Shown piece by piece: positions 43,470 to 60,700 of a stretch of 64,000 bases of DNA; within the stretch, counting starts at the first letter, position 1, and every line of letters begins with the position of its first letter. A program made the position numbers and the translations under genes. Under the pieces are notes generated by a model. That model was not told the DNA's origin. It did no database searches and saw nothing but the letters and a program-made list of their open reading frames with translations. Source of the stretch: Sminthopsis crassicaudata (taxonomy: Eukaryota). The stretch lies in NCBI RefSeq assembly GCF_048593235.1, contig NC_133620.1:348306454-348370453 (forward strand). The letters run 5' to 3'.

Positions 43470-46400
43470 TCATGGTGAAAGTCTCTCATATAACCAGTCA
43501 TTCGCACCACGGTGGGTCATGGGCCCTGATGCAGGCTCTCCAGGTTGCAGCCTTCGGAAGACAATCCGATCGTGCAGTCGGTTGGTTTGACCCTGCCAGA
43601 ACTCTACTACTTCTGGATATAGGATATAGCCACCCCTAAAGGGAGAGGGAGAGGTTTCATAGTTGTGAAGCTTCCTTCTATAGACTTGGTTCAAAGCCAC
43701 TGAGAGAAGTGGTTGGGCTGAACTTCATCTCAGGCCCAAGATAATGTCTGCGGCTGGTCCCTGAGGGGCTGAGGCTCTGTCACCTTGCAGGTCAGAATCA
43801 AATGGGATAACTTCCCATTTTCAAAACAAAATGCTAGATTTGGTGTGGAAGGCCAGATTTAAATCTTATGCAACTTAACTGTGTGACTTCACTTGTCTGG
43901 GGTTAAATAAAATAAACTAGATGGTTTCTGAGGTTCTTTCCATCTATGATCCAACAGAAGCTGTGTCACTCACCAATATTTAGGCTTGGGTACATCCTGA
44001 TCCTGGTATATCCCCTTTAACTCTTCATTCTTCTTCCTTAGATACTGTTCAAGAGGAAGGGAAATATAATGGGTACCAGAATCCCTGGGGAAAATCCCAG
44101 TCCAGGGATCTGAAAATGATGGTTCCCTCTGCCTGATTAAGTATATATGAGAAACTCTGGAAGAATAAAGACCACAAAGAGAGTGGATAGGTGCTCCTTT
44201 CTCTCTGTGTCCTCTTTCCCCATGTCACTCACCTCCCGATCTGGGATAACAGAGCTCTGGTGACTGACGACTGCCCCGATTTGACTGCTTTTAGGGCGGG
44301 AATGGAAATATAGCTCAGCCTCCTCTTCCGGCAGCCTCTGTACCTGTCCTTCAACACGTACCTGCTCAGACAGCCACAGGTGAGGGGGTAGGGTGGAGAT
44401 GGAATTCTTCTAGTAGATGACCCAGTCACCTTTATTTTCCCCATCCACCTCAAAACACAATCTAGTCTGACCCAGGAGCCAGGTCCTCTGTTTTTCTATA
44501 TTGGAGGATGGATACTTAGGACAAAGAGAGATTTCCTGGGAAACCTCTCTCCAGTGTACCCAACATTTTTACCATCTTTGCTTACTTAGACCTTTCTGAC
44601 CCTATCCCAAACACGCTTACCTGTCTATTGAGAGGCGCCCAGTAGAAGACGAGGGAGGCAAAAGGGTTAGAATCCTGGAGAAAACAGAAAAAGGCATAAG
44701 GACAGGGTGAAAAATAAAAGCCTCCTCCCCATGAGGGGGAAATGTAACTTAGCTTTATAGAGCAAGAGTGGAGAAGAAAGATGAGAATGAGGCTTTCTGG
44801 GAAGAGCAGTTGTTGTACTTTCTCCCACACTTCTCATTTGCTGGCCACAAGGGCCCAAAAGAGTCGCTTCTTTCTACTCTGTCCTGGGAACCTAGCCTTC
44901 TATATCTGAAGAGTGGAGAAGCTAAGTGAGGAGAATGTAAGGGGGGAAAAGGGGAGGAAGAACGTACCAGAGTTTCAGATCCTCTTTCCTTATTTTTATG
45001 GAAGGACACAAGAAGGGAGATGTGAAATGCCTGTCATGTTGGCATGAATAGAGGGAGAGCTTTTGGTTTTTTCTTTACTAGAAACCCTCACCAGCTCTTT
45101 TCCTTTTCGGCTTTCAAAGTTAGTGAAGAAACGGAAACCATCCTGGTCAAAGCCCTTTAGCAGCAGCATTCGGGCAGAAGGCTTTCCATCCCTAAGACAC
45201 ATAGAAATAGAAAGAATGGTCAGTACCCCATCGTCATTCCCTCAATTCCCTCCTGTAAAGGAAATTAAAGAAAAGGGATTTGATTAACTTGAGGCAGCAT
45301 TGACTGTGCCTTAACTCCATATTATCTTGACCCTTAAAAATGTGGCTCATTTAAGGACAAAAACCAGGAATCAAAATCTATCAATTATTTATTGAGCACT
45401 CTACACATGGTGCTGTGAAAGAGGTGTATGTGCCCCCAAGTTTATTACTTAGGGAAAGATATAAAAATGTGGGAAATAAAGTGACCAATAAAAATAAGAG
45501 GTAATGATAAAATTAAATTAAAGTAACAAGATTACAAGAGGCAATTGTAACATTCTCCTCTAAAATGTAATGTTCTCTGGGAGCAGGTTTCTTGGGGGCT
45601 TTTGGAGGCAGCCTTCCTTTCAGTTCAGTAATCACCCCAAAGGCAGCCGGAGTTAAAGTCCAAATCCTTTATTATCTCCTTCACTTGGGGCTCAACTTTC
45701 TGGAGACCTTTCTCTCTCCTTGGTTCTGAGAGGCCTGCCTTCTCTGGCTTCTGAATCTCCAAGACTGAATCCTGGCTGAGGCTCCTAGTGGATCTTGAAG
45801 ACACCAATCCTTATATCAGTAGGAAACCATTAAATCAATGCTAAACTAGATTTAATCACTGTCTCCTCAATTCCACTCAATCCCTATCTCCTTGTAGGAT
45901 TAAATCAATCATACTGATCCAAGCTAAACTAGATAACTATAGTTTCTTATCAGTTCCACTGATTTAGCTCCTCATTTCTTTTTTTTTTTTTTTTGAATGT
46001 TGAAAACTAGCTTTATATGTAGTTGGAAAAATAAAATACTATTCAGAATTTTTTAAACATTAATTTTATAATTATAACATTTTTTTACAACATTATCCCT
46101 TGTACTCCTTCTGTTCCGAATTTTCCCCTCCTTCCCTCCACCCCCTCCCCTAGATGGTAGGCATTCCCATACATATTAAATATCTTATAGTATATCCTAT
46201 CCTAGGTACAATATGTACAGAACCGAAATTTGTTGTTGTTGTTGCAAAGGAAGAATTGTATTCGGAAGGTAAAAATAATCTGGGAAGAAAAAAACAAAAA
46301 AAAAATGCTAACAGTTTACACTCATTTCCCAGTGTTCCTTTTCTGGGTGTAGCTAATCCTGTCCATCATTGATCAAATGTAATTGAATTTAGCTCCTCCT

Positions 46401-47790
46401 TTCAAGTTCTGGCCCATACCAGGTAATAATAGCCATTAAAGTCTTAAGATTTACAAAATACTTCACATACATATTATCTCCTTTACTTCTCATAATACCC
46501 CAGTGAAGGGAGGGTTATTATCATCACATGAGGCTAAGAGACTTGCCCAGAGCCCCATAGTATCTGTTTGGGGCAAGATTTGAACTGAGGTCTTCCCTTC
46601 TCCAACTCCATGCTCTAACCACCACTATGCCAATTAAGACAAGAGGTACAGACTCAAGGCAGGTGGCCATAGTAGTTCGCCATCTATATAAATCTAATGT
46701 GACGATAAATTGTAACTTTCATTGTGGTGGCAAGAACTGGAAACGGGGGAGGATGTCTGTTAATTGGGGAAGGGCAGATTGTGATGGAATACTATTGTGC
46801 TATGGGAAATAGGGAGATCTGTGTGAAATGATGAAGAGTGAAATGAGCAAAGCCAACACTGCTTACAGTAAAACATTTTAAGAACTAAGTCATTTTCACT
46901 TAACACTTCCTAGCTGTGTGACCCTGGGCAAGTCACTTAACCCCAGCCTCAGGGGGAAAAAAAAAATCATTTTGACTATCATAAGTACCCAAATTAACTT
47001 CAAAGGACGTAAGGAGATGCCTTCTGCACCCAGAGAAAGAACTGACAGATGGATGTACAGAATAGTTTTACATATACAGTCAAATCTGGGGGGAGGGGAA
47101 AAAAGGGAAAGGGAAATTTACTCGGTAACATATCGATTGGGAAGGAACAGCCTTCCCAACGTAATAGATTTTCAGTTTCGCATTATCATCTTTTATACTA
47201 AAAACAACAACAAAAAGTGTGAGTGCGGAGGGGCAGTGCCAACCTGGTGCAGAGGCCAGGCCTGCTCCCCCCGGGAGAAGGAGCAAGGGTGGGGAAGGCG
47301 GCGGTGCTGGGACCAGACCTCGGGGTCCTCACTAGGAAGCAGGGGTGGGCAGTGCTGACCTGGTGCAGGTGGCCAGGCACATGGCATTGGCTTCAAACAC
47401 CTCCGGGCACCGGGCGGCTTCTTCGAACCAGCTAGAGAACTGCTGGATGGGGTCCAGCGAGACCAGATGCGCCTCCTCGAAGGCCTGGGCGAAGGTGAAG
47501 GGCAGAGCCGGGGCCTGTCCCTGAGCTCCCGGGCTCCCCCGGCCGCCCCCTCCCTCCTTCCCTCCGGCTCCCCCTCTGCCCCCGCGGGAGCTCCAGACAT
47601 CGCTTCCCCCCGACCCCTCGGAGGCGGCACCTCTTGGTCCTTGAGGTAGCTCTTCCTCATGTGTCCCAGATCCATGACAGCTCGAACCGCACACCCGGTC
47701 CGCAGGGAATCCGTCAGCACCGCCCGCTGCCAATTCCACCACGTCACGACGCCCAGCAGTACGCTACTCACCCCCCCGTCGGGTCGTCAT
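43470..47790 (-). CDS. PNPO: Pyridoxine/pyridoxamine 5'-phosphate oxidase, 7 coding exons
   Basis: Exons on minus: 47631-47790 (see frameshift finding; in-frame ATG at 47675), 47360-47484, 45092-45191, 44621-44674, 44233-44361, 43974-44044, 43470-43635. GT-AG introns with consistent phases. Motifs [66 protein letters not shown]. Confidence 0.95.
45970..46375 (-). mobile_element. L1 3' end fragment(s) in PNPO intron 2
   Basis: Poly-T followed by the reverse complement of an L1 3'UTR. Confidence 0.75.
46898..46966 (+). mobile_element. 5'-truncated WSINE1-like SINE
   Basis: cacttaacacttcctagctgtgtgaccctgggcaagtcacttaaccccagcctcagggggaaaa; flanking tcatttt repeat. Confidence 0.8.
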
Positions 47791-48900
47791 GGCGACCACA
47801 AAGCCTCGTGATTTGCCACTCTGCGGCCCGCCCCGCGTCCCCCTCTATTTACTCATTCTCTTTCCTTTTCTCCCCCTCCTTTTCTCACCCCAGTACCCGG
47901 TTCTGATTCAGCTTCCGACTCTTCGCTTCCTCCCAAGCCCGGAGGGCCCAGCCGCTCAGTCTAACCTCCCGCCGACTCCGCCCCTTCCATTCTAGAATCC
48001 AATGGGAGGCCAGGGTCGGGGAAGCGGGGGACAACACGGAAAGCTCATTGGCTGAGTCCTCCGGGAACGGGGCCAATCGGAACGTGAACAACAGAGCCTC
48101 CGCACCAATGGATAGCGCCGACGGGGGCGGGAACAAAGAGACCAGGAAATGTAGTCACTGCCGTCAATACGCACATGGAGGTGTTGTTAAAGGTACAGGA
48201 GCTGCCGGAATCGGAGCTGGGGAGGGGAGGGGGAGTGCACCTGAGACGTGGGGGGATAGGCCGTGGTGTGGTGGGGGGAGGCAATCTCAGGGCAGCTGGG
48301 ATGATTAGGCGTCGCATGGACGGGAAGGGGAAGAGGGAGCCTCAGGGGGCAGCTCGGGCTTTGGGAAGGGGAGAACTGGGACAGGGGCAGGGTAATGGGG
48401 TGAGCCGCGCTGGGGGAAGGGAGAGCCGGCGCCGGGAGGGCGTCTCGGGGAAGAAGTTAGTTGTAGGACGGAGGACTGAGGCTGGGTGCGGGCTGCGGGG
48501 AGGTCTCCATAAGGCAGGTAGGCACTCGGGCTCGCCCTCCCGGGTTCTGAGACGGCGCTCCGCGCCTCGGGCTCCGTGCGGGTGCCGCAGGCTTTCCTGC
48601 CTTGACCTCCCCTCGGGCTGAGTCTCCTCGCTTCTGTCTCCAGGTGCCCCGGGGGCCGGTCCCCCGCTCAGTGCCGGCAGATGGCTGAGGGGGCCGGGGA
48701 CAGGGTGGCTCTGCAAGGCCACCTCCAGGCTGCGGACCCCGGGCTCGGCGATGCAGAGCCAGCCGGTGCCCACCCCACCTTTGACCTGACTGAAAGCTCC
48801 CTGGGTGGGGGCCCTCTGTGTACTCCCAGTTTTCAGCAACAACAGCAACTGGAGTTACAAGAGCCGCCCAGGCAGGTGCCCCTGGAGTGCGCCAGGTAAG
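47200..48900. promoter_or_regulatory. CpG island and bidirectional promoter (PNPO / BEN-domain gene)
   Basis: High GC and CpG; CCAAT boxes at 47999, 48047 (reverse), 48073 and 48105; GC box near 47957; divergent genes on either side. Confidence 0.85.
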
Positions 48901-51900
48901 GGATCCCTTGCTGGTTCTTTGAGGCGGTGAATAGTCAAATCTCCAGCGTCCATCTTATGCAGATTGCTCCCAGCTTCATTATGTGCTCAAGGGTATGTAC
49001 ATTTTCAGAACCGAACAGTCTGCCAGATAAACCTCTGCCAACAACTGCTGCTTGTATGAGTATATTCTCCTCCTAGCCTCCGGGGTCCCTGAGCTGGGAG
49101 GGACTCAGAAACCACATAGTCTCATTTTGCAGATGGGGAAACTGAGGCCCGGGGTGTTGTCCAAGGTCACACAGGCAGTGTCAGCTCTGGGATGTAAACG
49201 AGGGTTCACCAACTTCGGTCACTGCTTATTCCATTGAAAAGATGGATTATGTGTTATTCGGGATTCTCCGGAAAACCCCTCCCTGCCATTGTAGTAAGGT
49301 GAGAGCTTACTGTACCACTTCCTCCTGTCTATTTCTCCACCTGTAAAATCCATGTTGTGGATTACAAGTAACATGTTGATGTCACCCTCAAGGTGACGCG
49401 CTTATGTTCTTGCGGCCACACTGGCCAGCCCTCCCTTGGCTGTAGCACATTCTGAGGGCAGCCAGGAAGAGGAGAGAAATGTCCCTCAGAGGCCTAGGGC
49501 CCAGGGGCAAGGTTAGTCAAGCTGAATTATAAGGATGGTGGTAAAATACAAATGTTACCAAGTGAATGATGGTGAAATACACAGAAGACAGTTACCAAGA
49601 GTGATGGAGAACCAGACTGCAGACCTGAGTATTGAGGAGGTGAAATTGAGACTGGTTACTTTCATACAGTGTGGGAGAGCACGGCCCCTGACTCAAAATG
49701 CCACTCAAAGTGAAGATTAGCAGCTTTATTAGGGTCTCACCTAGGAGAAGCGGGCAGTCCTCACTGAGCGCTCAGAGGAAGCCCATGGTTACAGTTAGAA
49801 GCGATTTAAATAGTCAAAAACCATAGGAACTCACGACTCCCTCCCCTCATTCGGTTAATTTCGCAGCTTGCTCACTGCTTGCTTAAGTGGAGGTGGTAAA
49901 TATGTTACAAAGGTTTGCTAAATTCTAGTCATCTGGATCCAGTTGACTTATTGCAGGTGTGCTTGCCTAAGTTTGCTATGGTTGGCGCTTCACAATGTTT
50001 GCGGATGCTCGCTTGAGCTGATAGGAGCATTCTACTGTAATGTGTGTACAAAGAGTTTCATTTCCCCAAACCCATCAGACTGTCCTAAACTAAAATTTAG
50101 ACTGCAGGCTCAGTCTACCTTAGTTAATGATTTTATGTGAAACCACACCAATCCCTCACAATTCCAAGGTCAGTGGGGTCAGGACAGTGGCAGAGCTGAC
50201 TGTTATTTGGGCTTTGGTGATGGGAGTTCAGAGCCTGAAGGTCCAGGAATATGACTCTAAGTCTTACAATGGGACCCAACAAAGGCTAACACTGAGCTGA
50301 GTATCCGGTCCTTGGCATTGGGATCTCTTATTCCCCCTCTGTCACTTTCCTCCCCTTCTACTCAGTGACTCTGTGCTTTTCCTTTGTAAGATTAAGAGGA
50401 CCCAGAAGGCCGGAACCACCCCTCCCTCTTTCTTCTGGTTCTTTGCAGTTTGTAATAGGCTTTGCCCACAAGGGTTATTAAAAAATTGACTTTGTTAAAA
50501 GCATTATCTGTATTTAGCAAACTCTTGTGCTGAGCTCTGGGGTGGGGGTGGGGGAATGAAATCCCAGCTCCTGGGCTTCTTGGCTTTCTTACTGGGGTCT
50601 GGTTTAGTTGTATGGAGAGAAATTTTTTTCTGGGGGCTTGAGTAAGAGATCCACACATTCTGCCTGTTTCCAGATACTTGGGTCCCTGAAATCCTGGGGG
50701 AATTGCTTCAGGAACTAAAACCCATACCTCTTTGGCACCTTATTTTAGCTTGGGTGAAATGAGGTGATGGGAATAGCCGATGAAGGTGTTCCCCTCCACA
50801 TCCCACTTCCTCCCAAGCGTCTCTCCATGGGCTGGGGCGTGGACACGGCTACCCGAGGCTCAGATTTGTGTTTTGCTTCTAGTGTGCAGGCCCGGGGGAT
50901 ACTGACTCTGGGGATGCCTGCCCCACCACTGCTGGCACCAGAAGAGGAAGCCAAGAACAGAAAGCGACCATGGCCCGCCAACGGGCCCAGCCTTGGCCCT
51001 CCCTTCCCACGGGGGCTAAGTGTCCCGGATCTGTCGGCTGCTCCTTTCTTCCCAAGTACTGGCTCCAACAGCCTGGACATTCGAGCTGGGGGCCTCCAGG
51101 ACGCTCCCCGCTTCCCAAGGACGCAGGAGCCCCTGCGGGCCGCCCGTCCCACCCCTGCCCAGCTGTGCCACCCCCCTGCCCAGCTTTGCCACCCCCCTGT
51201 CCTGAGCCGGTTGAGCACAGAGCCACTAGAGCCTCTGCCCACAGAAGGCGCCTGCCCTTGGGCGGCCAGAGGGGGCAAAGTCACGGGGCTGTATGCCGAA
51301 CTAGTAAAAGAGTTGGAGTTACAGATGGCAGAGCTTCGGAGGCTGCTGGTCTCCAGGGAAGAAGCAGTTCTGCAGCAAGAGAGGAGGATCCGTGAGCTGG
51401 AACTGGAGAATCAGCAGCTCAAGGGTCAACTGCGGAGCCTAGAGGAACAGAACGATCTGTTGTCCAGCACCCGAGGTGGCGAGGGGCTCAAAGAGCCCTT
51501 TCCCAACAGCAGCCTCAGCGCTGGGAGCCGCAGCCTGGGTAATGGGAGCTGGCCTCCCTGGGACCTGGACGGGGGGCCCTCAGGCTGGCCTGCAGAGATG
51601 ATTGTGGGCTCCAGCCAGCTTTGCCTACCATTTCCCTCTCTTTGAGCAGCCCACTTTTCTGGAGATTCGCCTTCTCCTACAAGCTCTGCCTTTTCCTCCA
51701 CTCCAGGGCTTTCTTTCCTTTTGCTCAGGCCCTTGTTCATGACACTACTTCCCAGATTCTGTCCTTCCTCCCCAAGAAGCCCTTCACCATGCCACCTTCT
51801 CCTGTGCTCAGTCACTCATGATCCCTTTGCCATCCTGGACTGACAGGTGGCTGCCATCCCTCCTCTTCCCTAGAACCCTCTGCTTGGTGCCTCTCAGCAG

Positions 51901-54255
51901 GGGCCTCCCAGAAGCAGGACCAATACTTCCATGCATCCTGGACCCATAACAAAAGGAACCTCAGAAAGAGGGGCTTGGAAAAGAGGTCCTCATGCTGGGG
52001 GGGGTTAAGGTTAGACTCCAGTAAGTCCTCCCGGCCCCATCCACAGCCATCCCCATAGGTGTGGCCTCTCTCTTCTCAGATGTCAACGAAGGGAACATCC
52101 AGTTCCTCAAAGGCCTGGTGGGGCTACTGGAGAGCAACATGGCATTACAGGTGGGTCCCTGATGAGCTAGTAGCTCCTGGGGCCCAAGGAAGAGGGACAG
52201 AGATCAGGCAGTGGGTGGGTGTCAGGACACACTTTTGAAAATCATCCAGATGCCCATGGTCCCCAAAGTCCACACCCAAACATATAAAACAATGGAGCTA
52301 AATGTAAATGTGCATCTCATTTTGTGTGCTGCTTCCTCTCCAGGAGCATATAGTTTACACCTTCCCCACAAACCCTAGCTGACTTCAGTTGCCCACAGGT
52401 GGAGGATGTGAAGGGGGCAAGGGCAGGGGGAAGAATCCAGCCCTTGGTTGTGGGGCTCAAAGGGGCCAGTTAGAAGCAGGAAAGCCAGGGGCATGTTCCC
52501 AGGAGGGTACCTGTAACAGGCAAGAAGGTGACCAGTGGCCTGGCACTGGTGAAAACATTGCCAGCATCTTTGGGAGAGGCTGCCAACCTTTCTTGTAAGG
52601 GATACCATAGGAAGCTGAAGAGCTGCGGCTTCTCTTTCTCAGAGTTGCTCTCTCTTCCTTCTCCAGGCGAATGGCCTTCCAGCCCCACTTCCCACATCAC
52701 CACCTATAGAACCCAAGGGATCTCCCGCTGAGGCCCCACGGTCCCCACCAGTCTGTAGGCTTCGAGCAGGACTCCCCAGTGGCTTCCCAGCATGGCTGAA
52801 CTCTGAGGATGGGGTGGGCAGCCCTGCTACGCTGAGTGAGGCCACCTGCCTGTGGGAGGAGAATATACAGGATACACTGCCGGATGGAACCCCTGTGTGG
52901 GCGTCACCTGTGGAGGTGGGTGGGTGCTGCGCATGACTCAGTTCCCCAGGGACTGAGAAATGAACCTCGAGCCCTTGAAGAAGTCAATCATTCAGTATCT
53001 AGATCCAGACACTTGGGGATGCTGGTCCTGAAGAGATGCCCATGAAAGCATCAAGCCAGAGGGATGGAGTGTTGACAGGCTAATAATGCCTTTTTGTCTT
53101 CTCTAGGAGAATGGGAGACCCAAACTGGAGCTGATCCCCAACTCAGGGGTCTACATCACTCACCACCAGCTAGATGACCTGTCTCAAGTATCAACAGACA
53201 AACCCAAGTTGATGACAAGGCGTATGTTGGATTATTTCTTCTCTCGGGAGACACTGGCTCGTTCCTCTGCCACTGGGCAACGAATTGCACATAACAACAC
53301 CACCATGGAGAAGCCCATCCGGCTGCCTGTTGCTGTAGTCAATGCCATCAAAGGTACCCAGAGGCAGATTCCCACCAAGGCAGTTGTTTTGTGAGGCTGG
53401 AGGAGGGAAGGAGCAGTCTGCACTGTTAGCTGGAATGGGCTATACAATAGTGGCCTGAAATCCCAGATTGCTTTAAGGAGTCCCAACATTTTATATATAT
53501 ATATATATATTTTTTTTTTTTTTCTGAAATGACTCAACGTCTCTCCTTTGGCAATAGATACAGTTCTGTTTTCCAAGTTGTGATTATTAAAACAATTAGA
53601 GAAAGCTGAGACACATTGTGGGTACAGGTCTAGTTCAGTCATGAGTTGTTAAAAGGGTGGTATTCAGTACACTGAGGGATGCATCTGCAGGAAGGATAGA
53701 GGGGAGATATGAGGAAAATCTGGAATGATAACAAAGATGTAAATCTTTTAAGAACAACCTGATAGTCTATACAGGGTTACGAAAAAGGGGATGAGACCTT
53801 GTAGGGTTGGAAGGTTAAAAAGCATTCCTAGGTCCAGTGTTCCTTTCTTGCCCCGCCCCCCAATTCTTTTCTCTATTTATGGGCCAGATCTTAGAGAGCA
53901 GGGAGGAGACAATTCTCCATTTCTATGTCAGCTCTCCCTGATTTGTGGCCTCCTATGGTTCCAGCTTTTGGCCTAGTCCAGGCATTTTGGTTTGATATGG
54001 GCAGTGAGAAGGATCTGGGAGGCTGAGTAACATCTTTCCCTTATAAACTCAGATCACAGTGGTATTACCTGGGAGTTCACTCTTGCCTGCCTCCCACTCC
54101 TGACCAGGAGCTAGATCTGAGCAGCCCCCTTTCTGTCTTCCCCAGAATATGTCACCAAGGTGTGTGGCCGTGGCTGTAACTTTAATGCCGTCATCAACAG
54201 CAAGTGTGGGACCTCAAGGAGGGCAGTCAAGAAGATGATTGTAAAGATGGAGTGA
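48681..54255 (+). CDS. Unnamed coiled-coil plus NACC-type BEN-domain protein, 515 aa, 6 coding exons
   Basis: Exons 48681-48895, 50883-51538, 52080-52150, 52667-52915, 53107-53353, 54146-54255. All five introns are GT-AG with pyrimidine tracts; phases 2,1,0,0,1 join into one 1548-nt open frame. C-terminus KLELIPNSGVYITHHQLDDL...LMTRRMLDYFFSRETLARSSATG...LPVAVVNAIKEYVTKVC...FNAVINSKCGTSRRAVKK aligns by eye to the NACC1/2 BEN domain. The exact N-terminal start is less certain. Confidence 0.85.
49670..50147 (-). mobile_element. Probable solo LTR, antisense in the first coding intron of the BEN gene
   Basis: TGTGG...CCACA ends; AATAAA on minus near 49726; CpGs present; no convincing TSD found. 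Confidence 0.5.
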
Positions 54256-54832
54256 GTGGGGTGAGGGGGGTGGGCCAGGTCCTACAATCTGCCAGCAGAT
54301 ACGTATTTTTTAAAAGCGCTCTCCAAGCAAGCACTGCACCATCAGGATCTGTCTTCAGGAGAGTCATGGGAATGGATAATCCTTCCCCTAAGCTTTGTAT
54401 TTTTTTCTGGGCATATTCCTGTTCTGAGGGCTATATAGGAATTGAATCCTAGTATCTAGGATCTCATGTGAGCTGTGAAAAGTCTGGTCAGCTGGGCAGA
54501 GAAGAGAAAAAAAAAGTGAGGGAATGATTGTTGTCCCATCTCCTTTGGCGCTGTTGGCTTTGGGAAGGGCAGCCAGAGCTGAGGACTAAGTGGCCAGAGA
54601 CTATACTATCTCCCCAACCCCGTGTTCTTATGTCCATGTACATTCTGGAAACAAGTGGTGTTGATTTGGGGTAGTGAAGAGGAGCCTCACTGAATGACCA
54701 GCTCCATGCAGGGGTTATGTTGGTCTCCCCTACCAAAGGAGAGGTCTGTCTGCAGAGCAGGCATCTTGAGAGATCAAAATTCATGACCAGAAGACTTCAC
54801 AGACTTTCTTGTACATAAGCCAGAACATTTCA

Positions 54833-54838
54833 AATAAA
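54833..54838 (+). terminator. Candidate poly(A) signal of the BEN gene
   Basis: AATAAA about 580 nt after the stop, with ATTAAA 12 nt further on. Confidence 0.6.
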
Positions 54839-56584
54839 GGTTGGATTAAACCAAGGTCACTGCTGCTGCTGATTTGCCACATCCTTCCATTCTTTCTAGA
54901 TCATGGGATTTTAGAGGTAGGAAAAACTACAGCATCTTAGTCGATTGGGAAAGTGCTTTGCTCAAGACCATCCACATGCTAAAGAAACAACAATTAAGAG
55001 GCAAACTAGTGTGACCTCTGCGTCCTGACGGTCTGTACTCTTCAGAACTCAGGTGGACTTGCAAGTTGCTAATCTTTTTCCTCTTGATTAGGGGAAGATG
55101 CTTGGTCAGTGTCCACATTTAGTTTTGAAACTTAGAAACAGTTGCCAGGAAAGGGAAAAACCCTTGCTACCTGGGGGAAAAACATGAGAATGGGGGCCTT
55201 CTGCTGAGGTAGAAAAGAGGCTAATTTATTATTTACTGCTAGAATTTGGAAGTGTTTAAAACAAAATATTGTTTGCCAATATGGGCTGGAGGAATGGTGT
55301 TCAGATCTATGATTTTCTCAGTGTAGAGTTCCCAGTGAGAAACTTTTTTTTTTTTTAAAAAACACAGATGGGCAACTGTTCTGTAAACTAATCTTTAATT
55401 GCCAGTGGAAAAATAAGGTAGACACAATTCATGATCCTGTCTGTCAATATCTGAGTCCTTAGTTTTCTTTGCCAAATAGAAATGGCCTTTTGTCCAAGTT
55501 TGGACAAGCTGCTGTTCTTAACACCTGAGTTCCAAGTGGCTGTAGTGTGCAATTAGTAAGGAAGCATTGAAAAATGAAACATGGAAACTGCTAGATCTCT
55601 CCTGCCACCCAATATGTTGTAGATATGGACACTAGCTCTAGCTCATTAGGACATGGTTTTAGAGGACAGATATTTAGAATACCAACTACAAATTCTCTGA
55701 GAGCATAATGACAATGCTAGCTTCATTTTACCATTAAGGAAACAGATTTAGAAAGTTAAATGACTTGTCTTGGCTAGTGAGTTGAGATTGGGATTCAAAT
55801 TTCAGTTTGCCAACTCTGTTTAGCAGCTATGTGCCATTCAGCTTCCATACTGTTAAGTAGAAAGTTGCCTAGCAAACACTGGTAACAAAGGGAAAATTCT
55901 AGAGCAAAAGTGGATGGCTCAGGATAACCTCTCCCCACTATAGCACATCTTTAGCAAATGTCCTTCCTCGAATAAATTATAATTCTCTATCAACAAGGAA
56001 ACCATTTTTTTATCTTGAACCTTAATCTAGCTTCTTAAGTAAATGACTATGTTCTGTCAGGAGCCTTTTCTGACCTCTGCCTGATGTCTCACCCTTTCTT
56101 CTTTGTACTTAGGTTAAGAAATGCAGAGGTGCTTGCTCCTTATTTTCATAACCCTCCTCACTACGACACAAGCACCTATTGAAATAAGCCACCCAAGTAA
56201 GACAGGCCATGAATGGAAGCACACTTCTGCAGCCTTGTGGTTAATGGGTGTGCCTCCACCATGGAGTCAGTTTCTCCTCTGGGAAAACTGGTTTATATAA
56301 GAAAAAAATGAGGACATCTACCCAAATAGGTTCCCTATGGGATTATGCCATTATTGGGCATGCATAAGTGGTAATACCTACCTTTGCAATTTCAGATGGG
56401 ATTCCCTGTTAAGGGCAAGAAGGGTAAGAGAAGCTAAGCTTTACTTTCTCCTTGGGCCCTTCTCCAAGCTCCTGAAGTTCTAGATTCCATCCCCACCTTA
56501 CTTTTTCCCCAGTGAAAATTCTCCAGGGTAAAAGACAAAGAGAGCCTCAAGGTCAAGCTGCTGACTTTGCCTCAGGCAACTAAA

Positions 56585-56590
56585 TTTATT
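56585..56590 (-). terminator. Candidate poly(A) signal of SP2
   Basis: AATAAA on minus about 1.2 kb after the SP2 stop. Confidence 0.6.
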
Positions 56591-56628
56591 AGCAAGAAAA
56601 AATTATTTGTCAGCTCTGTGCTGACCAA

Positions 56629-56768
56629 NNNNNNNNNNNNNNNNNNNNNNNNNNNNNNNNNNNNNNNNNNNNNNNNNNNNNNNNNNNNNNNNNNNNNNNN
56701 NNNNNNNNNNNNNNNNNNNNNNNNNNNNNNNNNNNNNNNNNNNNNNNNNNNNNNNNNNNNNNNNNNNN
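56629..56768. other. Assembly gap (N run) in the SP2 3'UTR
   Basis: Run of n. Confidence 1.
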
Positions 56769-57767
56769 TGTAGGAGACACAATATTGTCTATTATACAAT
56801 ATACACTATACACAAATGGGATCTGAGTAGGGATATGGGATGAGATAAAAAGAAGAAAGGGGAGAGGAACAATATGTTTTGTATGTGAATGTGAGGGTTC
56901 TTAAAAAAAAAAAATCAGATTCCGGATTCAAACTGAAATTTTACGTTATTTAGAAGTGAAAAGTCTATGGAGAAGGAAAAATTTTTTTCTGTTCATCATT
57001 GTCCAAAAAACAAAAACCCCAATCCCAAACTGAAAAAGGAATGGGGGAAGGAGAAAGATAAGGAAAGGAAGTAGGAAGCAATTAAATAAAATTATTTAAA
57101 AGCGCACACAATACACAGTGTTCATTATCTGGAGTATAAGGCAACGTTCTTCATAGAAAAACAGGGAAGATCAGAAGGAGTCTGTGGTTATATATACTTT
57201 TAAAATATAAAGTTGGAATGTGCTGGAAGAAAGTTTGTTTTTTGTTTTTTTTTTGGGGGGGGGGATGCAGGTGTCCTTCCCACTTTCTCTGTGGATAGCC
57301 CTTGGATGGGGCTCTGTTGCTGCCATGCTGCCCTCTGGTGGGAATAGGGTATGACAGACCCACAGAAGAGGGGATGGCACAGAGGGATGCATCTCCTTTC
57401 TGGCTCCCCTGCCCTGGGCCACATCAGTGCTATGAGATAGGGGAGGAGAAAGGAAGGGGACTCACTTGGCTCCTCGATGGAGTGAAATTCATGTTTTTCC
57501 TTTGGAAATAAAGGTTCCCACTCGTCCTGGTTTAGAACGTCTCATTGTACGTGGCCAATGTCCGGGATCTGGGCCAGGAGCTTATGGTGGAAAGAAAAGG
57601 GGCTGTTGTGGCAGCCAAATGGCTTAGGAAGGAGGAAACATGGTTATTGAAGCCCCTCTCTGCAGGACCACAGTCAGGGAATAAGGAGTCAGCAATGGTG
57701 CCTCTGACTCTGGAGGCCCCAGGCTGAATTGGAGTTGAATCTGCAGAGCCTTCAACCGCTGTTGGCT

Positions 57768-60700
57768 TTACAAATTCTTTGTGACCAGATGGGTCTTGTA
57801 ATGCTTGGTTAGGTGGTCGCTCCTCATGAAGCGCTTCTGACACTGGGCACACTCGAAACGCTTGTCACCTGGGGAGAGAAAAGGCCTGTCATTCCTGCCC
57901 CCTACTTTCCACATTCAGCATATCCTAGAGGTCCTGCTCCACAGAGCTCATCCCCCAAAGGCAGGAAATAAGAGAGTGCAAACACCCAAATGAAGATGTC
58001 CTTAATCAAGTCCCACCTCAGACCACATATAAACTGGTTTCAGACACCCTGTGGTTCCACTGAGCCACTTTACTTTCTTATTAGTCTCCAGCACAATTTT
58101 TTACACCTATTCCCTGATCCTCTGAATGTGATTTGTTCATTTCGATTCCATGCTTTTGGGTTATTCTCTACACTTGGAATGATGCCCCCCTAATTGTTTC
58201 CCACAAATCTATACCTGCCTTCCAAATAAAAGGACAATATTTCTAGTTTGAACCCAAGCCTTTCTAATCTCTTCAGCACTCAAGATATTCAGCTGGTACT
58301 TTTAAGTCTAGCCATGCAAGTGGCTCTATTAGTTGTTTCATGAATGTGCATTTTCTCTCTCCAACAAATGTTGCACTCCCTCCCTGATGGTCAGTATTCT
58401 ATTACCCCAAAAGATAACCGACTCCCAAGAGACTGGGCAGAAGAACCAAATTTTATTTTTTCTTTTTGGCGGTAATTAGCTCAGTTTTCTGTGTTATGGG
58501 GAGGAATTAAGAGTTTCTGCTGCAAATTCCAGCCCCACTCAGGAAGTGAATCACAATCATAAGAAAAGAGTTGGGAAGCCATAAAAAGTCATCAAGTCCA
58601 ACTCCATTTTAAGGATAAAGAAACAGGCCTGGGGAAGATAAGGACCTTGTCCCGGGTCACAAAGGCAAAGGTCAGAAGTCGAGCTACTCCCTGCCATCTA
58701 AGACTGGGGGGGGCACGGAGATGGGCTGACCTGTGTGGGTGCGGGCATGCCGCTGGAGCTCATCACTACGCGTAAACCTCTTGCCACAATAAACCCAGTT
58801 ACAGACGAAGGGCCGCTCTCCAGTGTGCAGGCGTACGTGGGCACGCAACAATGATGTCTTTCGGAAGGTCTTGCCACAGTCAGGGATGTGGCACACATGC
58901 TTCTTCTTCCCCTGCTCTCCAGACCTGGGGGGGATTTGGAGGGAAGCAAGAGTGAAGGCAAAGGGAGAGCACCCCAGGATGGGCCAGGAGAGGTACAGCA
59001 TGGGGGCAGGAGGAGTAAGGGGGAAGGACGGCACAATAGGAGGGTGAGAAGGGCCCACCTTCTTCTCTTAGAATTACCTTTTCTCCCCATCCTTGCAGTT
59101 GGGGCAAGTACAAGCCATACGACGCCTCTTCTCCCCTGGCTGGACCTCTCCTGCTAGGGCCTGCTCCATCTGCAGCTGAATCTGCGTGGGGCTCAGGCCA
59201 CTGATAGTCAGGTTGTTCCCAGAAACATTCTGTACAGTGAGCTGCTGCTGTCCTGAGGGAGGGGCAGGAAAAGGAGATGGAGGTGGGAACAAAGGCCTGG
59301 CTCAGACACTGGTCCCTCCCACAGGTGGAACCCCATCACTCTTCTGTCCCCCATTTGGATCTAGAAAGGCTCTTGCATCTCAAAGATGCTGTGTAGCAAC
59401 ATCCCACCCCCAACCCAGCTTCAGGGAAGTCCTCAGGGAGAGTCTATCCCTGCATGTAAGTAAGAAACAAGCTGCAATCAATCAGGGCACTTTGGAAAAA
59501 TTTCTAAGACAGAGAAGTCACAAACACAGCAGAACCAGACTAAAGTGTCAGTGGGAACTATTTAACAAAAATAAAAATACAATAAAATGTAGATACAACT
59601 TATTTTAAAACTAAATATGTCACTTACAGGGATCCTGATGTATATATTTGTGCTCTTACCCCCTCCCCCAATTCCTATTTCAGTTTAACACCTAAGATAG
59701 TAATGCATGAGCTGATCAACCTTGTGGAAACTATATTATCTTAGCCCTGAGGGTCAGCTGGTCAGGAACCAAAGGAAGAATAGCAATAGCCCCTTCTCTA
59801 CCTTTCCACTGACAGGTGAAAAGTCTAAAATGCATTAAGAATTAGGAAGATTGAAAAAGCTATCATTAGTCTGAAAATAGTCCTTTGCTTAGTTACAGTG
59901 CAGTGTTAGTGATCACCATGGGACAGTTATTTGCAAGGCTGATAACCTATTTGCATTGCTAGTACTAGACCTTGATCCTATCTGAGGAAGGTCTCCTTTC
60001 ACTCCCATCAGACTTAATACTCCTTTATCCCAATTCTCCCCAGCACTTCCATTCTCACTTTGGAGCACATTCCTTTGCTTTGGTCTGTGAAAGTGTTTCT
60101 AAAGATTTTCAAGTGTCCTATCTCCTCAATCCTGATAGTTTATCATGGTTCCTTAAGGGCCTTTTCCATTTGCTTGTTTACAGCAGAAACTGCCCATAAA
60201 ATTGTCTCTCCACTTAGAGAAGAGGGACTATCTTTTCCCTTTGTGTCCCCAGTGCTCAGCCCAGTGCTTAATGGCTTGCCATTCATTCATCCCTTCCTCC
60301 TTCCATCAGAGGAAGGACTCACGGTAGCATCAAGGATACGACTGCCCAGTCAGTGCTGTGGGCAGACAGACTCTTACCTCCAGTGTTGGTGATAGTGACA
60401 GGTACACCTTGGACCTGGACACCATTGATATTAATGGTCTGCATAGCTTGCGCAGCTGCTGCCAGCTGGGCCGCATTCAGGCTGATGATGCCTCCAGCAG
60501 GAGCAATCTTTGGCAGGGGCCGTTCCTTCCGAGAAGTGGCCGTTGAATGCTTTTTACTGGTGCTTCCCAAGTGGGGGCTCCGGGTTACAGGGCTACTACA
60601 GGAGGTGGTAGAGGCAGCAGGCACTGTCACCGAAGGGGGTTCTTGTAAGAGGACTGTCTGCAGCTCCCCCGAAGGCATTCTGATATAAATCTGGGTGGGA

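Follow-up and report, generated by a model that had tools for sequence, protein, structure and literature searches.

An old BEN-domain gene between PNPO and SP2 in a dunnart, its disabled remnants in eutherians and a plausible link to the non-coding RNA SP2-AS1

A 64,000-nucleotide stretch of the genome of the dunnart Sminthopsis crassicaudata (contig NC_133620.1, positions 348,306,454 to 348,370,453; hereafter the window, numbered from its first letter) carries an intact gene for a BEN-domain protein between the genes PNPO and SP2. This BEN gene is an old gene of jawed vertebrates, placed between PNPO and SP2 in both dunnart and ostrich; it is already annotated but unnamed and unstudied. Comparison with eutherian genomic DNA supports its pseudogenisation in situ in eutherians, with retention of the promoter that it shares with PNPO. 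It is plausible that SP2-AS1, the long non-coding RNA (lncRNA) annotated at this locus in human, is the non-coding remnant of the BEN gene, the human link being drawn from literature labels. Taken as a whole, the reading that an intact old BEN gene died in place in eutherians and left SP2-AS1 behind as its non-coding remnant is judged moderately probable.

The BEN gene lies on the plus strand at ~48.0-54.9 kb of the window. Its open reading frame (ORF) encodes 515 amino acids, all junctions are GT-AG, and the product is colinear with annotated marsupial and turtle proteins over its entire length. Exon by exon, the gene is 100% identical to isoforms X2 and X4 of Sminthopsis crassicaudata LOC141539057, whose annotation label is "uncharacterized protein". 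The differences between the two isoforms are explained by an alternative first exon (49249-49296) and by the skipping of 52667-52915. The promoter and gene features are as follows.

47999-48205, unstranded: promoter block shared by PNPO and the BEN gene, with four CCAAT/ATTGG boxes, one GC box and one ETS-like site; CpG observed/expected ratio 0.86-0.98
48108-48192, plus strand: 5' exon, start unmapped; donor GT 48193-48194; koala isoform X2 residues 1-28 map to 48108-48191 with 96% identity
48644-48895, plus strand: exon 1, start codon ATG 48681; acceptor AG 48642-48643, donor GT 48896-48897; 100% identical to Sminthopsis isoform X4 residues 1-71
49249-49296, plus strand: alternative first coding exon (isoform X2); Sminthopsis X2 residues 1-16 map there with 100% identity
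50883-51538, plus strand: exon 2, large, with a basic motif (KNRKRPW) resembling a nuclear localisation signal (NLS) and a coiled coil conserved from shark to marsupial
52080-52150, plus strand: exon 3, short (71 nt), encoding the conserved helix NIQFLKGLVGLLES, residues 239-260 of the predicted model
52667-52915, plus strand: exon 4, linker, skipped in isoform X4
53107-53353, plus strand: exon 5, N-terminal half of the BEN domain; Pfam BEN E=5.9e-8 from this exon alone
54146-54255, plus strand: exon 6 (last), C-terminal half of the BEN domain and stop TGA 54253-54255; alternative donor GTGAGT at 54252-54257
54833-54838, plus strand: likely poly(A) signal of the BEN gene, the first AATAAA past the stop, from a motif search and the Monodelphis extension

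A preliminary description of this DNA had the BEN gene running opposite to PNPO and SP2, starting by the PNPO promoter and ending ~1.7 kb from the SP2 poly(A) signal. This arrangement is borne out (54833 vs 56590-56585), and the boundaries given there for exon 5, 53107-53353, are exact. The outer limits had to be revised: no transcription start is mapped at 47790, the conserved block of promoter and 5' exon being 47999-48205, and 56590 belongs to the SP2 poly(A) signal and is not the end of the BEN gene.

With the ostrich orthologue as query, 99 proteins were matched at E<1e-10. They come from birds, turtles, crocodilians, tuatara, squamates, five marsupials, frogs, a caecilian, the coelacanth and four sharks, and no eutherian, monotreme or teleost protein is among them. 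All named matches are labelled "uncharacterized", "hypothetical", "unnamed" or just "BEN domain-containing". A separate phmmer search recovered an axolotl protein; this search used representatives at 50% identity, within whose clusters a eutherian copy could hide, so the absence from eutherians rests on the 99 matches. Exon 5 is 92-95% identical to coelacanth, caecilian and turtle (92% between dunnart and coelacanth) and 72% identical to shark. The order in the ostrich locus, PNPO(-) / BEN(+) / SP-type zinc finger (SP2)(-), is the same as in the dunnart, which makes the position ancestral at least for amniotes, in line with the loss in eutherians inferred in the preliminary description. Proteins of Lingula (P0110) and Argopecten (P0108) match the BEN exon at 51-52% identity, above mammalian NACC2 (P0119), and the BEN lineage seems to predate vertebrates.

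Eutherian SP2 loci with 10 kb of downstream flank were compared from pocket mouse (L002), chinchilla (L003), spotted hyena (L004), leaf-nosed bat (L005) and marmot (L006). Only the hyena and bat loci extend to PNPO, and the flanks of the other three stop short of PNPO and exon 1; the sample informative on the loss consists of Laurasiatheria and one rodent. The SP2-to-PNPO interval spans ~8.6 kb in bat and ~7.7 kb in hyena, and no called gene lies inside the complete bat interval. The hyena annotation holds a 299-residue plus-strand model (L004 24077-32237) that begins within the interval, runs past the end of the locus and is on the wrong strand for BEN; possibly it represents PNPO with exons added at the upstream end. 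Searches by tblastn with 13 orthologues located exon 1 in hyena (28852-28641, E=5e-18) and in bat (41464-41296, E=7e-12), in each case in two reading frames and on the strand opposite to SP2 and PNPO. The collinear blocks found by blastn from the window are the PNPO exons, the promoter block, exon 1, a piece of exon 6 and the SP2 3' untranslated region (UTR). The promoter block is 72-75% identical to hyena and bat by blastn, with 82% mean column identity in a three-way alignment, and the exon-6 piece of 50-70 nt is collinear in all three species in which it was detected (E=1.7e-4 in hyena, 8e-4 in bat and 1.5e-6 in chinchilla). The remnants are located as follows.

Hyena L004 28864-28632 and bat L005 41464-41296, opposite to SP2/PNPO: exon-1 relic, from tblastn, blastn and alignment
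Hyena L004 25379-25332, bat L005 37144-37077 and chinchilla L003 39238-39184, opposite to SP2/PNPO: exon-6 trace, from blastn with the window
Hyena L004 29730-29531 and bat L005 42428-42224, unstranded: promoter block, from alignment

The start codon has changed from ATG to ATA in both hyena and bat. The two species share two 1-nt deletions, at window positions 48680 (just before the start codon) and 48812 (coding, a frameshift), and a 4-nt deletion in exon 6. Lesions of exon 1 confined to the bat are a further 1-nt deletion and a 40-nt deletion, and in chinchilla exon 6 the acceptor is lost (AG to AA) and an in-frame TAA is present. The GT donor of exon 1 is intact in hyena and bat; that of the 5' exon is intact in hyena and altered in bat. 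Neither per-exon hidden Markov models (HMMs) nor tblastn with the 13 orthologues revealed a relic of exons 2-5 in any of the five eutherian intervals, exon 5 included, and in the ostrich control the per-exon HMMs recovered exons 2-6. Exon 5 is the best conserved exon in the coding lineages, so we infer that its absence points to deletion rather than slow decay. The preliminary description had proposed that eutherians lost the coding capacity and kept the promoter, a proposal that alignment of the exons to eutherian genomes could bear out and an intact eutherian orthologue would contradict. The exon-1 and exon-6 relics support death in place in three eutherians, the promoter block is retained in hyena and bat, and instead of an intact orthologue there are disabled collinear relics in hyena, bat and chinchilla and 0 eutherian proteins among the 99 matches.

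An alignment of the whole hyena and bat intervals shows an identity of 0.55-0.75 in most bins; the values are higher for the promoter block (0.89), the exon-1 relic (0.87-0.90) and the SP2 3' UTR (0.8-0.97). Conservation of the promoter block and of the exon-1 donor is similar to that of the interval's other conserved blocks. This one pairwise comparison suggests that the exon-1 relic is more than debris. The ~70% identity between dunnart and hyena in exon 1 was also considered as proof of constraint and was rejected, because by a rough estimate neutral decay could yield a similar value. A ~300-nt block in the former intron 1, just downstream of the exon-1 relic (L004 28283-28581), has a hyena-bat identity of 0.81-0.83 and could be a eutherian-specific exon or a regulatory element.

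In human, a 530-bp differentially methylated region (hg19 chr17:46018654-46019184) is annotated 'PNPO/SP2-AS1' (PMC10403495), and this label on a PNPO-promoter region fits a start of SP2-AS1 at the PNPO promoter. The neighbours reported as co-altered (co-amplified) with PNPO include SP2-AS1, CDK5RAP3, PRR15L and SP2, and the BEN gene is not among them (PMC8814662). A 'new house from old stones' scenario for lncRNAs is discussed in Hezroni et al. 2017 (PMC5577775); SP2, PNPO, SP2-AS1 and matching hg19 coordinates are not among the listed entries of the accessible supplementary tables of that paper. A published study of head-to-head gene pairs contains nothing on the PNPO/BEN pair.

The locus resembles the lncRNA fossils of coding genes treated in Hezroni et al. 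2017 (PMC5577775) in that a coding gene present in opossum-to-coelacanth-grade outgroups is absent in eutherians, position and orientation are held between the same anchors, similarity is confined to a few exons and literature labels place a lncRNA there in human. Position and orientation relative to the anchors agree between dunnart and ostrich, and in hyena and bat the relics follow the exon order on the strand opposite to the anchors; the coding gene is represented by 99 orthologues in non-eutherian vertebrates and by relics in three eutherians. The locus differs from typical lncRNA fossils in that a living gene, PNPO, uses the same promoter and could trivially account for its survival, and in that the similarity here is known to eutherian genomic DNA. 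The resemblance to unitary pseudogenes lies in the loss in place without a functional paralogous copy, with start-codon loss, frameshifts and missing exons; unlike in unitary pseudogenes, the promoter, first exons and splice donor look better conserved than the surrounding neutral sequence. The classic case of a coding gene turned lncRNA is that of Lnx3 and Xist.

In the mechanism proposed here, the BEN gene would have died in place in eutherians, its coding capacity gone and its CCAAT-box promoter and exon-1 donor kept. The divergent transcript still starting at the PNPO promoter in eutherians, SP2-AS1 in human, would then be a lncRNA derived from a unitary pseudogene. Transcripts running on beyond the former poly(A) site, as proposed in the preliminary description, may have given rise to the antisense overlap with SP2. 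Several points weigh against this account. The ~70% dunnart-hyena identity of exon 1 is about what neutral decay over ~100 million years could leave in a slow lineage, the case for constraint rests on a single hyena-bat comparison, and the promoter block may be conserved only because PNPO needs it. The relic exons are placed in hyena, bat and chinchilla DNA, and the exons of human SP2-AS1 would have to coincide with them; the transcription start and 3' end of the dunnart BEN gene are taken from orthologue annotation, motifs and coarse word-sharing with sequencing runs. Finally, CpG-island promoters are commonly transcribed divergently, and such a transcript could appear with no inheritance from a dead gene. 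An extension of the proposed mechanism, in which the gene died early on in eutherians, the promoter-proximal exons and donors were kept by selection and spliced SP2-AS1 gained a cis function of its own, such as tuning PNPO or SP2 through shared-promoter or antisense effects, is speculative and, on balance, doubtful.

The strongest competing explanation accepts the death of the BEN gene and takes SP2-AS1 to have arisen independently, as a by-product of bidirectional transcription from the PNPO CpG-island promoter, with new exons, new splice sites and a new poly(A) site derived, for example, from repeats. The relics would then be passive debris, conserved only where they overlap PNPO regulatory sequence. 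The block at 47999-48205 resembles a typical CCAAT/GC-box bidirectional promoter that PNPO needs anyway, and with exons 2-5 gone most of any eutherian transcript cannot consist of inherited exon sequence; such a scenario is discussed in Hezroni et al. 2017 (PMC5577775). However, the exon-1 relic lies ~0.7 kb past the promoter block and yet has 0.87-0.90 hyena-bat identity, well above most of the interval, and its GT donor was kept in both species despite the frameshifts and the loss of the start codon. We regard this explanation as unlikely, though as one to be taken seriously.

A working eutherian orthologue might instead persist, unannotated at the locus or moved elsewhere. Absence from protein databases may reflect annotation gaps, and the rodent flanks end before the PNPO side. 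Nonetheless, eutherians are missing from all 99 orthologue clusters despite the annotation of hundreds of their genomes, the bat interval has no called gene and the hyena interval only the wrong-strand plus model, exon 1 has lost its start codon and its frame in hyena and bat (with a 40-nt deletion in bat), and the HMMs found no trace of the ultra-conserved exon 5, all of which makes a surviving orthologue very improbable. A marsupial-specific gain of the BEN gene, the contrary case named in the preliminary description, is refuted by the PNPO(-)/BEN(+)/SP2(-) order in ostrich, by orthologues in sharks, coelacanth, amphibians, squamates, turtles, crocodilians and birds with a BEN exon 72-95% identical, and by the eutherian relics; nothing was found in its favour.

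The encoded protein scores 44.5 bits against Pfam BEN (PF10523; cut-off 23.2) over profile positions 2-76 of 76, as measured on orthologue P0030, whose exon 2-6 portion does not differ from that of the window. BEN is the sole Pfam domain in the 460- and 509-residue orthologues, in which Pfam found no BTB domain, and the protein is therefore not a NACC protein. An AlphaFold model (37 orthologues) contains three confident elements, namely a 66-residue helix, the helix of the 71-nt exon and the BEN fold, with disorder elsewhere. The long helix, a predicted coiled coil, comprises residues 149-214 of P0030 with a predicted local distance difference test (pLDDT) score of 90-98; the BEN region has a pLDDT of ~90, and the N-terminal 140 residues are predicted to be disordered. 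The best PDB matches of the model are the DNA-bound BEN domains of NACC1, Insv, Bsg25A, BANP and BEND6, with template modelling (TM) scores of 0.61-0.71 normalised by target. By sequence, the closest solved structures are those of the NACC1 BEN domain (8yzs and 7bv9, E=4e-11). The predicted architecture is that of a nuclear protein in which a disordered N-terminus carrying an NLS-like motif is followed by a long coiled coil and then, at the C-terminus, by a NACC-type BEN domain of DNA-binding fold.

The C-terminal position of the BEN domain is shared with NACC1 and NACC2, and the likeness to NACC1 extends to 33% identity in the Foldseek alignment and to a fold match with a TM score of 0.64-0.69 normalised by target. 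NACC1 and NACC2 combine BTB and BEN, whereas the dunnart protein has no BTB/POZ domain and a coiled coil stands in place of that oligomerisation module. Because the Lingula and Argopecten proteins are closer to it than NACC2 is, the gene would represent a separate, older lineage rather than a NACC paralogue that lost its BTB domain. With BEND5, BEND6 and Drosophila Insensitive it shares a disordered N-terminus, a coiled coil and a single C-terminal BEN domain, and the model matches the DNA-bound BEN domains of Insv and BEND6. It differs from BEND6 in having a BEN domain much nearer to that of NACC1 (Foldseek E=1e-4 vs 0.3), and from BEND5, BEND6 and Insensitive in its locus and in having no eutherian member. 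BEND5, BEND6 and Insensitive act as dimeric sequence-specific repressors. By analogy, the protein would dimerise via its coiled coil and regulate transcription, probably by repression, through binding to a specific DNA motif; it is most likely a dimeric sequence-specific DNA-binding regulator.

At the 3' end of the BEN gene, the consensus donor GTGAGT (54252-54257) overlaps the stop codon TGA at 54253-54255. The Tasmanian devil and opossum proteins have C-terminal extensions, and the extension in Monodelphis (opossum) matches the window at ~54770-54830, which implies transcripts extending at least to there; an alternative last exon probably exists. Expression in the dunnart was gauged from the share of sampled sequence words present in sequencing runs labelled 'RNA?', a coarse and weak proxy. 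Runs such as X10, X11, X13 and X16 contain 0.47-0.60 of the words of 47700-54900 and 0-0.10 of those of the gap at 54900-56500. The presence of words up to 54900 and their near absence beyond it fit a transcript ending near 54.9 kb, and weakly suggest that the BEN transcript ends there. The runs of one study (P2; X5, X6, X9 and X15) contain ~0.7 of the words of both the gene stretch and the gap, and the gap words in these runs could stem from DNA or, in some samples, from read-through or a longer (SP2) UTR. At the 5' end, a CCAAT box in the 5' exon contains an upstream ATG (48108-48110), from which koala isoform X2 is read. In the dunnart this frame meets a stop at 48787, so the koala X2 N-terminus is probably not a real protein. 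Within intron 5, a (TA)n/poly-T low-complexity tract (53488-53525) gives rise to spurious short blastn matches in the marmot locus.

The gene order in the window is CDK5RAP3 / PRR15L / PNPO / BEN / SP2, the neighbours having been identified by Pfam. Their features are listed below.

~5.8 kb, minus strand: CDK5RAP3, by Pfam
39.0 kb, plus strand: PRR15L, by Pfam
43.5-47.7 kb, minus strand: PNPO, with ATG 47675 and C-terminal exon 43473-43724
47484-47675, minus strand: first two coding exons of PNPO, head-to-head with the BEN gene; intron 47630-47485; conserved with hyena and bat PNPO
56585-56590, minus strand: SP2 poly(A) signal AATAAA, closing a 3' UTR of 1.2 kb; the sole minus-strand AATAAA in 56000-58000
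57771 upward, minus strand: SP2, whose last coding exon ends at 57771, by Pfam

A single CpG island (47400-48800) holds the head-to-head 5' ends of PNPO and the BEN gene, and the promoter motifs fall in 47999-48150. The PNPO ATG at 47675 and the end of the BEN 5' exon at 48192, which are coding and exon positions and not transcription start sites, flank four CCAAT boxes within this island, a candidate bidirectional promoter. PNPO intron 1 (47485-47630) is ~145 nt long in the dunnart vs ~900 nt in hyena (L004 30023-30929) and bat (L005 42705-43623), and 47675 is the most upstream in-frame ATG of the dunnart PNPO ORF. On the other side, the BEN gene and SP2 are tail-to-tail with their poly(A) signals (54833 vs 56590) 1.7 kb apart. 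The SP2 signal is located within a block 81-86% identical to the five eutherians, ~1.1 kb beyond their SP2 stop codons. A gap of 140 N at 56629-56768 in the SP2 3' UTR is flanked by two blocks conserved in eutherians.

Among vertebrate DNA-binding proteins that lack a name, the predicted product of the BEN gene is one of the most conserved, yet the gene has no copy in any placental examined, and the placental loss offers a clean natural knockout for asking what the factor does. If the proposed history is true, it would give SP2-AS1, which appears mainly in cancer-signature papers, an evolutionary origin, and it would add one more documented case, its shared lesions datable, to the few lncRNAs that descend from dead coding genes. 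Since the promoter is shared with the essential gene PNPO, the case may help to separate an inherited lncRNA from a promoter by-product. Should SP2-AS1 also have gained a cis function, placentals would have dispensed with a factor whose BEN domain is ~70-95% identical from shark to marsupial, implying that the network of its targets was rewired when Eutheria arose.

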